Positions 55,651 through 61,325 are shown, numbered from the stretch's first letter. The stretch: 64,000 nt of DNA from Guillardia theta CCMP2712 (GCF_000315625.1 NW_005434487.1:23720-87719); one strand, 5' to 3'. Notes: generated from the letters alone by a model not told the origin. Numbers and translations are program-made.

Positions 55651-56030
55651 AGCCGGCCCTTAGTAAGAGCAGCCGGCCCTTAGTAAGAGCAGCCGGCCCT
55701 TAGTAAGAGCAGCCGGCCCTTAGTAAGAGCAGCCGGCCCTTAGTAAGAGCAGCCGGCCCTTAGTAAGAGCAGCCGGCCCTTAGTAAGAGCAGCCGGCCCT
55801 TAGTAAGAGCAGCCGGCCCTTAGTAAGAGCAGCCGGCCCTTAGTAAGAGCAGCCGGCCCTTAGTAAGAGCAGCCGGCCCTTAGTAAGAGCAGCCGGCCCT
55901 TAGTAAGAGCAGCCGGCCCTTAGTAAGAGCAGCCGGCCCTTAGTAAGAGCAGCCGGCCCTTAGTAAGAGCAGCCGGCCCTTAGTAAGAGCAGCCGGCCCT
56001 TAGTAAGAGCAGCCGGCCCTTAGTAAGAGC
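55651..56030 (+). repeat. 19 perfect copies of AGCCGGCCCTTAGTAAGAGC
   Basis: 380 nt at 20 nt per unit, no spacers. Confidence 0.97.
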
Positions 56031-56119
56031 ATGCGGCCCTGCGGCGCGTAGGGAGAGCGCAAGGGGACCGGTGGAAGCTGCGAGCAAGAGGTTCATATAG
56101 TTCAAACAGCTTTCCAAGC

Positions 56120-57264
56120 ATGGTACTACAGTATGATGAGAGCGTTCGCAACCTGCTGTATCGGAGATCATGCCAATACACGCAGGGTGAGCGCTCTGGA
56201 GGCCACGTCGAGGAGGCCGCCGACCTCGTCGAGAAGGTGAAGAACTTCACCAAGCGTTATCCGAATAGTCGGACAGCTTATGCTTGCAGAGCTGAGGGGG
56301 GATGCACTCCCGACGCTATCGCTGAAGCCATCCGCTCGACATGTCGGCAGGCGAGACGCGACCTGTTTGAAGACTCTCTGAGCGAATGGAGCTCAGAGTC
56401 GAAAGCATGGTTTATTCAACAGATGGAGGAGGCCAAGAAGCAGAATGTCGAGACATACATCGGCACCAAAGGCACCGAGGGGACCTCCTTCATCTCCATG
56501 ACTCTCCTAGGGATTTCCTCGATGTTTGTTCGACAAGAAGAAAAGTTGAAAACGAAGCTTATGGAGCTAGGTCTCATGGTAGACTCAGTCGATGGAGTCG
56601 ACAAGGCCATCATGTGGAAAGCACCTTACAGACCTGAGATAGCACGAGCAGACGACATCTCAGTCACCGTCTCCTTCCTTCGGAATGAAGCAGCCATAGA
56701 GCTATGGGAAGGCAGGAGAGAATACACTATCGAAGGGAGAGTCTTTCGAGCCACAGAGGTGAGCATAGCACACGACCGGTCCTTCAAGCTTCGAGCCAAG
56801 CGAGGACCTTGGGGCAAGGGAGGGAGCCTTGCCGAGCTATCACAGCTCCTAGCTCTCGGAGGAATGTCGACGGCCGAGATCGCTCAGATTTATCGATTTC
56901 AGCTGCTCTCGCAATCCGAGGCTTGCAGCCGCAGAGGTACAACCGCTTGCAGGCATGCTCGTGCAGGGTGCTGGGCAGAGAGGTCGCAAGGGGCCGAGCC
57001 CGAAGACGTATGTCGCTGTTGGGGCAAGTACGGGAACTCTCCAGCAAAAAGAGCTGGAGTGGGTGCTCAGCTCGCCTTCGACGGCAAGTTGCGAGCAGAC
57101 CTTGGCCTCGTTCAGAGAGAGCGAGGCGATGGAGGGGGTGCATCTCACTCTCATCAGCGACGACGCCAAGCTCACGGGGAGACGTTTGCAGTCGAGCTCA
57201 CAGCCGACACCTTCGTTCCTAGGGGAAAGATCGCTAAGCAGAGGAGGGCACTTCGCGAGAGAGA
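56120..57264 (+). pseudogene. Subfamily B ORF, truncated, with two compensating frameshifts
   Basis: Homology to the subfamily A protein moves to another frame near 56920 (QPLAGMLVQG..ELEWVLSS..FRESEAMEGVHLTL) and returns near 57180 (AVELTADTFV). Confidence 0.8.
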
Positions 57265-57297
57265 TTTAGGGTTTAGAGGGTCTTGTTGGCAGCCTTG

Positions 57298-57356
57298 AGG
57301 GTTTAGGGTTTAGGGTTTAGGGTTTAGGGTTTAGGGTTTAGGGTTTAGGGTTTAGG
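57298..57356 (+). repeat. Telomeric tract 3, perfect (TTTAGGG)n
   Basis: Read directly; preceded by a 12-nt tract at 57265-57276 and a 21-nt insert. Confidence 0.97.
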
Positions 57357-57840: not shown

Positions 57841-57932
57841 ACCATGGCTGCACGCGTGGTGTAGGGGAAGCTGCCAGGGCGCCAAGGAAGCTGCAAGCGA
57901 GAGGTTTGTATACTTCAAATAGCTTTCTAAGT

Positions 57933-60417
57933 ATGGTTCTTCAGTATGATGAAAATGTTCGCAACCTGCTGTATCGGAGATCATGCCAATACACGCAGAG
58001 CGGACTTGTGGATGCCTCTGTCCTCGAAGCTGATCTCGTCGAGAGGGTGAAGAGCTTCGCGAAGCGTTATCCGAACAGCAGGACAGCCCAGGCTTGCAAG
58101 GCTGTGGAGGGATGCACCCCCGACGCTATCGCAGAAGCCATCCGCTCGACATGTCAGCAGGCACGACGTGAGCTTCTACAAGAAGCGATGACTGGATGGA
58201 GTGACGCATCCAGAGAGTGGTTTATGCAGCAGATTGAAGAAGCCAAGAAGGAGAAGGTCGAGACATACACCGCCTCAGCAGGCAACGAGGTGACTTCCTT
58301 CATCTCCATGACTCTCCTGGGCATCTCCTCGGTGTATGTCAACGATGAAGAAAAGCTGAAGAAGAAATTTGAAGAGATCGGACTGATCGTAGACTCAGTG
58401 CAAGAGAGTAAAGCAATCATGTGGAAGGCTCCGTATAGACCCGAGATAGCGAGTGCTGAGGAGATCCCGGTGACTGTTTCCTTCCTCCGCAATGCACAAG
58501 CGGAGAAGCTCTGGCAGGGAAGAGAGGACTTCGCGATCGATGGTCGCAAGTTCACAGCTGTACATGTGAGCATCGTGCACGATCGATCTTTCAAGATTCG
58601 AGCCAAGAGAGGACCCTGGGGCAAAGGGGGCAGCTTGGCAGAGCTGACTCACCTGCTAACCTTGGGCGGCATGACAACGGCTGAGATAGCTGCCGTCTAT
58701 CGCTATCAGCTGCTGCGCCAGTCCCTTGCAGCGGTCCAACTCCAGCCGCTGGCAGGCATGCTGGTCGCTGGGGCGCCAGGCCAGCAAGTCCACAAAGGCT
58801 TAGGTCAGAAAGGCTTCGTCGCTGTAGGGGCCAACGTCATCTGGAGACAGAGGGAGGTGGAGTGGATCGTCTCCTCGAGCTGCCCAGAGGCGAATGATAC
58901 AGCATTTCGAGCTTTCCGAGAGAGCGAAGCGATGGAGGGAGTACACCTGACTCTGTTCAGCGAGGACCCGAAGATCAGAGAGGCGCTCGCAGTCGAGTTG
59001 ACAGCCGATCGCTTTGTGTCCAGAAATAAGTTGAAGAAGGCATCAAGGATGCAGAAGAAGGCAGGCGGCAAGGACGGCAAGGAGATCAAGATCATCATCA
59101 AGTCGACGGCGGCATCTGGTCGCTTCACGAGGAAGGAGATGGAGGGGCTGTGCAACGGCGGCAACACGTCTATCGCAAGAGTCAAGAGAGTCTTGTTGGA
59201 GATCGCTAACAGGCTCGAGATCAACGTTGAAGGCATCGACATGGAGGAGGATTTGAACACCAAGTCCTGGAACGGGTCCAAGCTATGCATCCTCCTCGGC
59301 TCCACGGAGGATGCTCGACGCATGATGAAGGAGCTGCCCTTCTATCTCGAAGGCGCAGCAACCAAGCTCGAAGCAGTCGGCTTCGACAAGGAGCCTGACT
59401 CTGAGGCGGCTGGTCAGCGGGGCACCAGCGACGCAGCGCAGCGACAGGAGGAGAGCGAGGGAGAGTGGCTGGAGTTTACAGACCTGGAGAGGATCACAAT
59501 GGAGGCAGCATCTCCGTCAAGCCAAGAGGACATGCAGCTCGTCAGCGAGCTGTCAGCAGTCATCGAAGATGCAGCTTCTTTGAACGAGGCAGGGACGAGC
59601 GAGCCGATCAAGCTGGTCCTGGACAAGGCCGTTGGCAACCTCCACGACACCTTCTACTCTCCGGGGAGCCTGGAGTTCATGGCGCTGGGAGAGTGGGCGA
59701 AGATGCCAGAGGAGCAGGGAGTTGGGCGCAACGCGCTCAAGGAGAAGCTGGGGAAGTGGCTGCAGAGCAAGCGCTGGACTCGCGTGCAAGGAGAGAGCAA
59801 GAAGGCAAGGAGGGGCAGCGCGTTCTCGCCACGGGCAACGGCAGCTGCTGAGCTTGAGCAGGAGGCGGAGAGCGACGACATAGAGCGTCGATCTCTTAGC
59901 CTCCTGTTCATAGCAGGGTTTAGGGGCAGGGACGAGCGAGCCGATCAAGCTGGTCCTGGACAAGGCCGTTGGCAACCTCCACGACACGTTCTACTCTCCG
60001 GGGAGCCTGGAGTTCATGGCGCTGGGAGAGTGGGCGAAGATGCCAGAGGAGCAGGGAGTGGGACGCAACGCGCTCAAGGAGAAGCTGGGGAAGTGGCTGC
60101 AGAGCAAGCGCTGGACTCGCGTGCAAGGAGAGAGCAAGAAGGCAAGGAGGGGCAGCGCGTTCTCGCCACGGGCAACGGCAGCTGCTGAGCTTGAGCAGGA
60201 GGCGGAGAGCGACGACATAGAGCGTCGATCTCTTAGCCTCCTGTTCATAGCACTGAGTAAATTCGCAGAGATGCATGTGCTGGCCTGCTCGCTGAAGGTG
60301 GACAAGAAGGACCGACTGCGAGTGGAGATGAGGGAAGATGACGAAGAAGAGGAAGACATGGAGGAAGAGCAAGGCGAGGGCGAGGAAGAAGACGGGGCGA
60401 GCCCGTACCGAGCTTGA
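57933..60417 (+). pseudogene. Subfamily A ORF disrupted by the internal duplication (frameshift after LSLLFIA)
   Basis: Near-identical to the copy 4 protein up to 59915; the native C-terminus is present in another frame (ORF 60016-60417). Confidence 0.8.
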
Positions 60418-60830
60418 GCTGAGCCCAAGGTAAGGAGAGAAGGTAGGAGGCGACCGAAGGCCAAGGTGGCGACCGAAGGCCAAGGTGAGGAGAGGCAACT
60501 CTTCTGAATGGAGACGAGTAGGTGGCGACCGAAGGCCAAGGTGAGGAGAGGCAACTCTTCTGACTGAGGCTGAGGAAGCCAAGAGAAGACAGCAGAAGTA
60601 GAGAGTAGAAAGACGCCTCAGAAGCAGGGTTCGCATTGTAGGCCGTGTACTCCCAGTGCTCGAGCGCCTCTTTAGACTAGGATCCAATTGCACAAGCCCA
60701 CAACGAGGCCTTGTAGGCCGTGTACTCCCAGTGCTCGAGCGCCTCTTTAGACTAGGATCAAATTGCAAAAGCCCACAACGAGGCCGAGCAACATTCTAGC
60801 ATTCTAATAAACTCACATAATAATAATAAT

Positions 60831-60902
60831 AGGGTTTAGGGTTTAGGGTTTAGGGTTTAGGGTTTAGGGTTTAGGGTTTAGGGTTTAGGGTTTAGGGTTT
60901 AG
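60831..60902 (+). repeat. Telomeric tract 4, perfect (TTTAGGG)n
   Basis: Read directly. Confidence 0.97.
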
Positions 60903-61325
60903 AGCGCCGGTTATTTCAGGCAGCGCCGGTTATTTCAGGCAAAAAGCGCCGGTTATTTCAGGCAAAAGCGCCAGCGCCGGTTATTTCAGGCAGCGCCGGT
61001 TATTTCAGGCAGCGCCGGTTATTTCAGGCAGCGCCGGTTATTTCAGGCAGCGCCGGTTATTTCAGGCAAGCGCCGGTTATTTCAGGCAAGCGCCGGTTAT
61101 TTCAGGCAAGCGCCGGTTATTTCAGGCAAGCGCCGGTTATTTCAGGCAAGCGCCGGTTATTTCAGGCAAGCGCCGGTTATTTCAGGCAAGCGCCGGTTAT
61201 TTCAGGCAAGCGCCGGTTATTTCAGGCAAGCGCCGGTTATTTCAGGCAAGCGCCGGTTATTTCAGGCAAGCGCCGGTTATTTCAGGCAGCGCCGGTTATT
61301 TCAGGCAGCGCCGGTTATTTCAGGC
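60903..61325 (+). repeat. Array of AGCGCCGGTTATTTCAGGC with variable extra A residues at unit junctions
   Basis: Junctions GGC-A-GCG, GGC-AA-GCG (11 in a row), GGC-AAAA-GCG and GGC-AAAAA-GCG, plus one abortive AGCGCC unit. Confidence 0.95.

Follow-up and report, generated by a model that had tools for sequence, protein, structure and literature searches.

Telomere-repeat-specific LINE retrotransposons of Guillardia theta carry 5' arrays of their own terminal sequence, possibly made by re-copying of the element end

The window analyzed here, 64,000 nucleotides of DNA from Guillardia theta CCMP2712, is the terminal 64 kb of contig C187 in an 87.1-Mb assembly. From position 54931 to the contig end, it consists of telomere-type tracts alternating with five head-to-tail copies of one element, with arrays of a short unit at three of their 5' ends. 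Protein matches identify the same strain as the source. These arrays are the 5' termini of telomere-repeat-specific LINE (long interspersed nuclear element) retrotransposons, and the copies in the window are non-autonomous members, with only the first open reading frame (ORF1), of a LINE family of the APE (apurinic/apyrimidinic endonuclease) type. With moderate confidence, we propose that the arrays were made during retrotransposition by re-copying of the terminal 18–28 nt of the element, and were then inherited and reshaped. An earlier note on this DNA, made from its sequence, had seen in the arrays a pseudo-telomeric repeat of each subfamily; they are no stand-alone pseudo-telomere, but the 5' termini of a LINE family.

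A full copy of the element is about 3.1 kb long and comprises the array, a leader of ~90 nt, a 715-aa ORF, a 3' untranslated region (UTR), a terminal module, and an (ATA)n tail. In an ORF and Pfam scan of the window, a reverse transcriptase (RT) domain was absent from every copy, an APE-type endonuclease was absent from the window copies as well, and the 715-aa ORF matched no domain in the Pfam search. Both activities are encoded by partner elements of ~10 kb at other contig ends, which contain ORF1 and an ORF2 of ~2500 aa with an APE endonuclease and a reverse transcriptase. On G. theta contig C64, a 716-aa ORF1 is followed by a 2502-aa ORF2 matching RVT_1 (1.9e-35) and Exo_endo_phos (3.2e-8; 34 bits vs. 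a Pfam cut-off of 24.5), and its endonuclease has a weak match to the L1 endonuclease in PDB. At least 45 ORF2 matches were found at G. theta contig ends, oriented like the window elements. The window ORF aligned with the partner ORF1s along its full length (32% over 702 aa, E 1e-81, and 29% over 664 aa, E 9e-79), and the last ~150 nt, including an identical CTAGCATTCTAATAAA, are homologous among subfamilies A and B and both partner families. It is the homology of the ORF to the partner ORF1, together with the common 3' end, that identifies the window copies as ORF1-only members of the LINE family. The family accounts for ~190 5' ends of A/C type and ~66 of B type in G. theta, and most contig ends are occupied.

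The window ORF family is limited to G. theta and one Hanusia phi protein from a transcriptome-derived set (37% identity), and exact-protein look-ups of the window ORF in assemblies gave no match. RT relatives above ~28% identity were found solely in cryptophytes, while outside them the matches were generic APE-LINE ones (22–29%). In an environmental contig with a 92%-identical window-type ORF, from a metagenome relative (L094), a partner element is next in line, with its own array of 21–23-nt units, a 712-aa ORF1, and a very long ORF2 (L094:5733-12860) matching RVT_1 (1.9e-28) and Exo_endo_phos. In L094 and two further diverged relatives from lake and freshwater metagenomes (L117 and L118), the order is telomere tract, short 5' unit or units, ORF1, ORF2, and (ATA)n tail. 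N-terminal to the APE endonuclease, the partner ORF2 contains in addition a Ulp1/Peptidase_C48-like region, something unusual in a LINE (E 6.5e-6 in L094; weak in C64, L103:2-2539, minus strand).

The placement of the copies is that of a telomere-repeat-specific LINE of the SART/TRAS kind, at a fixed phase and in one orientation. They sit in TTTAGGG tracts, where the G strand is their sense strand and their 5' end points to the centromere; they are on the minus strand at contig starts and on the plus strand at contig ends. In 27/32 distinct full-length 3' ends, a tail ending in TA is followed by GGG. The modal 5' junction is TTTAG(G) followed by unit base 1, and the modal 3' junction is (ATA)n or (CTA)n followed by GGG. 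All 34 phase-0 5' junctions are preceded by TTTAGG (26) or TTTAG (8). Taken together, the TA/GGG ends at the 3' side and the TTTAGG or TTTAG at the 5' side imply staggered cuts with a target duplication of 2–4 bp. The earlier note held that every copy begins with AG directly after TTTAG(G). This is so in all five window copies, but genome-wide only 34/83 scorable 5' ends start on unit base 1 (~41% vs. 5% expected by chance), and the others start at 10 further phases or in the leader. Thus, the telomere phase at the 5' junction is modal, not fixed.

The arrays are not due to chance, as the genome contains 808 matches to the A unit and 335 to the B unit with at most one mismatch, and none to the reversed-pattern controls. 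Tandem Repeats Finder and our own parse placed the window arrays where the earlier note had found them, and bore out most of its description. In copy 2, the 19 B units of 20 nt are exact and each join is a single A; copy 3 has 20 exact A units and one unit interrupted by a 77-nt insert. The 21 A units of copy 4 are joined by one A (seven joins), two A (eleven joins), five A (one join), or four A followed by an abortive GCGCC start (one join). The single unit of copy 1, taken in the note for a degenerate A unit, turned out to be an intact unit, AGGCGCCGTTATTTTCGGC, of a third subfamily, C, which elsewhere in the genome forms arrays of up to 36 units. We tabulated unit number, phase, and joins genome-wide, as the note had suggested, for 103 distinct 5' ends of A/C type; of the B type, only a few arrays were read. 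The number of full units varied from 0 to 39, with none in 16 ends, one in 31, 2–5 in 26, 6–20 in 20, and more than 20 in 10.

Variation in the arrays is concentrated at one phase, the unit join. We counted 49 independent runs of non-canonical joins in 548 joins, as compared with 25 independent runs of substitutions in 635 unit cores of 17–18 nt, and indels lie almost solely at the join. The right edge of the unit shifts from array to array (GGC, GGCA, GGCAC, GGCACC, GGCACCATGG or GGCACCATGGCT), with an equivalent range in subfamily C. The clearly untemplated letters at joins are A or G, such as AAAA or AAA, and abortive units break off after the first 6 or 11 nt. The B arrays show join heterogeneity like that of A and C, as well as an abortive start of 11 nt. 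At its extreme 5' end, each family has a unit of its own, in agreement with the claim of a separate repeat for each subfamily, and this extends to the RT-encoding partners, whose arrays have five units of 26 nt, four of 20 nt, at least 16 of 20 nt, or two of 18 nt. Moreover, four truncated 5' ends (L032, with five repeats, L058, L064, and L071) have re-grown 19–21-nt repeats of whatever sequence is terminal, and in 4/4 cases these begin exactly at the telomere junction. That the repeats start at the first base whatever it is, and that indels fall at that same phase, points to copying tied to the end of the element rather than to the random birth of a minisatellite. Template switching is pointed to by a chimeric A/C unit (L018) and by the 77-nt insert in the copy 3 array, which comes from the 3' UTR of subfamily B (an example of the source is L031:9525-9601).

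Since the family has an endonuclease, a defined 3' tail, and two phase-specific junctions, reverse transcription would start at the 3' end, and the array would be made at the 5' junction. In the mechanism that we propose, the ORF2 endonuclease would nick the C strand within the telomere tract, reverse transcription would begin at the 3' tail, and joining of the 5' end to the telomeric G strand would come last. The predicted cut sites are opposite TTTA^GGG for the C strand and after TTTAGG for the G strand. At this last step, the terminal 18–28 nt of the element may be copied again and again, either by the RT jumping back once it has reached the 5' end of the RNA, or by re-alignment of the G-strand 3' end on the 3' end of the complementary DNA (cDNA) at the start of plus-strand synthesis. 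Each round would yield one unit with a variable right edge and, occasionally, an untemplated A or G. Afterwards, the arrays would in part be passed on by inheritance, lose length through 5' truncation, and undergo further change by slippage and by recombination among chromosome ends. We lean toward re-alignment of the G-strand end over jumping back by RT, because the extra letters are plus-strand purines, abortive units contain the opening letters of the unit, and the telomere end (TAGG) is similar to the ends of the units (CAGG, ATGG, CAG).

Re-alignment on the cDNA is close to the picture drawn in the earlier note, with the cDNA end as the template and an endonuclease-made 3' end as the primer, and it is in this form that the picture may be kept. 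In its specific version, the telomeric G-strand 3' end would be repeatedly re-aligned on the last ~19–28 nt of the cDNA, which may be the stretch first freed of RNA, and each LINE family would write its own short repeat beside the telomere before its body is copied. We put this forward tentatively. If true, it would amount to a telomerase-like step within target-primed reverse transcription, and would regenerate a truncated 5' end together with any promoter that it carries.

A possible though unlikely explanation is that the arrays are ordinary minisatellites, that is, that an ancestral 5' repeat of ~20 nt, perhaps a promoter or protein-binding module, is inherited via DNA or full-length RNA, and changes solely through slippage, unequal exchange, and break-induced replication among chromosome ends. 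Alignment is possible between the units of all families (AG start, T-rich middle, AGGC or AGAGC before ATG), so the repeat could be ancestral. Homogeneous blocks would be natural under such a scheme; examples are the 11 two-A joins of copy 4, which are successive and give a 20-nt period, and 29 units with one common T>C change in L014. The telomere-like last letters of the unit (CAGG vs. TAGG) could seed slippage at the junction, and the de novo repeats of L058, L064, and L071 have AGG/GG microhomology to the telomere end. Besides, slippage and break-induced replication are found in similar fungal telomeric elements (PMC7367193). However, slippage has no preferred phase, yet the indels occur at one, which is that of the first base of the element. 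At the joins, the runs of A and the extra purines appear to be untemplated, slippage does not put 77 nt from the 3' UTR of a different subfamily into an array, and new repeats that are not made of the unit start exactly at the junction. RNA-like assemblies also seem to be without most array words: 80–88% of body words were present in assemblies of transcriptome size, whereas array words, of which just 14 were sampled, were present at 14% in such an assembly and at 64% in one of genome size, the 'RNA?' label of the runs being an automatic guess. These counts hint, weakly, that the RNAs carry few units. A Logan contig with telomere repeats and three units before the ORF (L093) is probably DNA of a relative, and was not used as transcript evidence.

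Several observations weigh against production of the arrays by re-copying. The label and sample size just given limit what can be drawn from the word counts, and the strand being synthesized as the repeats arise is only inferred. Interior point variants exist, namely the 25 independent substitution runs. Identical 15-unit arrays occur at three loci (L017, L019, and L023) along with long homogeneous blocks, and DNA-level copying and slippage fit these equally well. These identical arrays and blocks show that the arrays are also subject to inheritance, slippage, and recombination. Three elements (L011, L018, and L081) adjoin a truncated upstream element directly, with no telomere repeat in between, and under the proposed mechanism these junctions need target-site deletions. 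Finally, the assembly is of the Sanger era and at scaffold level, with N gaps inside elements (L031:2537-5890 and 9180-9279), and may have collapsed array lengths and some copies.

The model of the earlier note differs from re-copying at the 5' junction in its primer and in its order of events: the chromosome 3' end, telomeric or eroded, would prime on the template without an endonuclease, ~20 nt would be recopied in a telomerase-like manner, and the body would then be copied outward. What stands of this model is the reiterative copying of the element end, as the arrays are tied to the terminal ~19–28 nt; priming at the chromosome tip with the array made first is improbable. It would account for proximal starts that are nearly always at the array, for the many distal ends at which the element breaks off internally and telomere repeats follow as a cap, joined at short G-rich matches, and for the three elements joined directly to eroded upstream ones. 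In addition, a run of 11 T separates the telomere tract from a partial C unit at the second 5' end of each of L005 (C184) and L007 (C289), which would be expected if priming occurred on the poly(A) of an antisense RNA, but it is the sole junction of this kind among ~100. Against tip priming, the arrays occupy the 5' position in the LINE sense, and the template would have to be antisense to ORF1 and ORF2, with its 5' end being the (ATA)n/(CTA)n tail. An APE endonuclease is encoded in the family along with the RT of the partners, the 3' tail is defined, and both junctions are phase-specific, with a small target duplication implied. Families with and without an RT have the conserved 3'-terminal module in common, which fits recognition of a sense RNA at its 3' end. 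The capped distal truncations are as expected for erosion and healing of terminal copies, which explains them without tip priming, and 5'-truncated copies with telomere repeats in front of them exist, although truncation statistics are biased, as most loci were fetched through the 5' leader motif.

That the arrays are passive parts of a subtelomeric repeat like Y' of yeast, spread by recombination alone and with no current retrotransposition, is very improbable: window-type copies at more than 40 contig ends are 97–100% identical and multi-element blocks are held in common, but there are many distinct telomere/element junctions of differing phase and unit number, ~2500-aa ORF2 frames are intact in several copies, ORF1 and ORF2 relatives occur in the transcriptome-derived proteins of H. 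phi (P0036 and P0060), and the same architecture is found in diverged environmental relatives.

The features of the window are listed in Table 1. ORF1 of copy 1 is broken off after ~170 codons and capped by telomere repeats, and the terminal module of the copy 4 3' UTR ends in CTAGCATTCTAATAAACTCA.

Table 1. Features of the terminal element array in the window (positions counted from the first nucleotide of the window).
Feature	Position	Strand	Remark
Degenerate telomere-type tract, border between unique DNA and terminal element array	54931-54999	+	
Copy 1, subfamily C: one 19-nt unit (55000-55018), leader, ORF1	55000-55577	+	
Telomere repeat tract, few variant repeats	55571-55650	+	
Copy 2 5' array: 19 x 20-nt B unit, AGCCGGCCCTTAGTAAGAGC	55651-56030	+	Tandem Repeats Finder, own parse
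Copy 2 body, subfamily B: leader and ORF1, distal end truncated, telomere-repeat cap	56031-57262	+	
Telomere repeat tract, 8.4 repeats	57298-57356	+	
Copy 3 5' array: 6 A units, one split unit, 14 A units of AGCGCCGGTTATTTCAGGC	57357-57841	+	
77-nt insert within copy 3 array	57483-57559	+	99-100% identity to part of subfamily B 3' UTR
Copy 3 body, internal scar at 59916-59926, (ATA)n tail at end	57842-60831	+	
Telomere repeat tract	60832-60902	+	
Copy 4 5' array: 21 A units, heterogeneous joins, one abortive start	60903-61326	+	
Leader, array to ORF1, common to subfamilies A and C	61327-61417	+	
ORF1-type protein, 715 aa	61418-63565	+	No Pfam domain
3' UTR with 76-nt repeats (63582-63804), conserved terminal module, (ATA)9 tail (63967-63993)	63566-63993	+	

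At its internal scar, copy 3 breaks at ...TTCATAGCA, continues with 1.5 telomere repeats, and restarts 337 nt upstream, which fits insertion of a 5'-truncated copy into the very short tract that had healed a 3'-truncated one. An element fragment of ~21 nt lies between two telomere tracts (57265-57300). The number of 76-nt repeats in the 3' UTR varies, with 2.9 in copy 4 and fewer in copy 3 (60440-60560). In the unique part of the window (1-44000), polypurine/polypyrimidine microsatellites are very common, for example (TCTCC)n, (CCT)n, and (AGG)n. Elsewhere in the genome, an element block on C72 (436979-442633, L009, and 432865) lies ~17–25 kb from the contig end in an orientation opposite to that of the terminal block, and may be due to scaffold misjoining, to inversion, or to an old fusion of ends. 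A 1595-aa 'ORF' in L031 was rejected as a larger element, being an artefact of an N gap, and the L032 locus is a scrambled internal relic.

A cross-family alignment of the 5' RNA gave no consensus structure. In A, C, B, and D1, pairing is possible between the first 6–9 unit bases and a segment of the leader 40–55 nt downstream, the sequences differing from family to family (window 61307-61376, 55000-55069, and 56011-56080; L104:957-1026). In single folds, this pairing was not significant (z-scores of -0.4 to -0.8), and the other families were without it.

In the searchable literature, we found no telomeric retrotransposon of cryptophytes described; a 2023 survey of telomere-specific LINEs covers insects, Giardia, Chlorella, fungi, a lizard, and rotifers (PMC10088271). 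The family appears to be previously undescribed, and its self-repeating 5' terminus would be a variant feature on a telomere-specific LINE. Among the closest known systems are SART1Bm and TRAS1 of Bombyx mori, which are likewise APE-type LINEs with ORF1 and an ORF2 containing APE endonuclease and RT, inserted at a fixed phase of the telomere repeat. The G. theta copies have the orientation of SART1Bm, in which the G strand carries the sense strand and the tail is joined to the G-rich part of the repeat (PMC7265360), and SART1Bm also forms head-to-tail arrays with short telomere tracts in between. SART1 ends in poly(A), whereas the tail of the G. theta elements is (ATA)n or (CTA)n, and unlike in SART1/TRAS1, their ORF2 is of ~2500 aa, with the Ulp1/C48-like region. 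In the parts of the SART1 description that were covered, no 5'-terminal arrays of 18–28-nt units were found (PMC7265360).

In Drosophila, HeT-A is an abundant element with only Gag/ORF1 that relies on its RT-encoding relatives TART and TAHRE, all of them building chromosome ends in one orientation; by analogy, the window copies relate to their partners as HeT-A to TART. However, the Drosophila elements are attached to the chromosome tip in the opposite orientation, their 3' ends being directed to the centromere, and no telomerase repeats separate them. MoTeR1 and MoTeR2 of Magnaporthe and FoTeR of Fusarium form pairs of autonomous and non-autonomous elements in telomere repeats, leave interstitial tracts, and have at their 5' ends short variant repeats or variable number tandem repeats (VNTRs) that differ in number; the elements often undergo truncation, healing, and break-induced replication (PMC7367193, PMC12857005). 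Their endonuclease is a restriction-like one, whereas that of the G. theta partners is APE, their 5' ends face the chromosome tip, and their 5' repeats are telomere-like hexamers, whereas the G. theta units are the element's own first 19–28 nt.

The self-repeating 5' terminus would be a natural record of how LINEs make their 5' junction, the least understood step of target-primed reverse transcription, and, if the proposed re-copying is true, a route by which a LINE can rebuild a truncated 5' end. It also offers a concrete system for asking how near retrotransposon RTs come to repeat synthesis of the telomerase type. As in telomerase, a short template would be recopied onto the G-strand 3' end by re-alignment, with the register fixed at the start of the template and with abortive starts. 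Unlike in telomerase, the template in G. theta would be the end of the element RNA or cDNA, the unit would be of 18–28 nt with a loose right edge, and synthesis would proceed into a body of 3–10 kb, with no enzyme of the TERT type implied.

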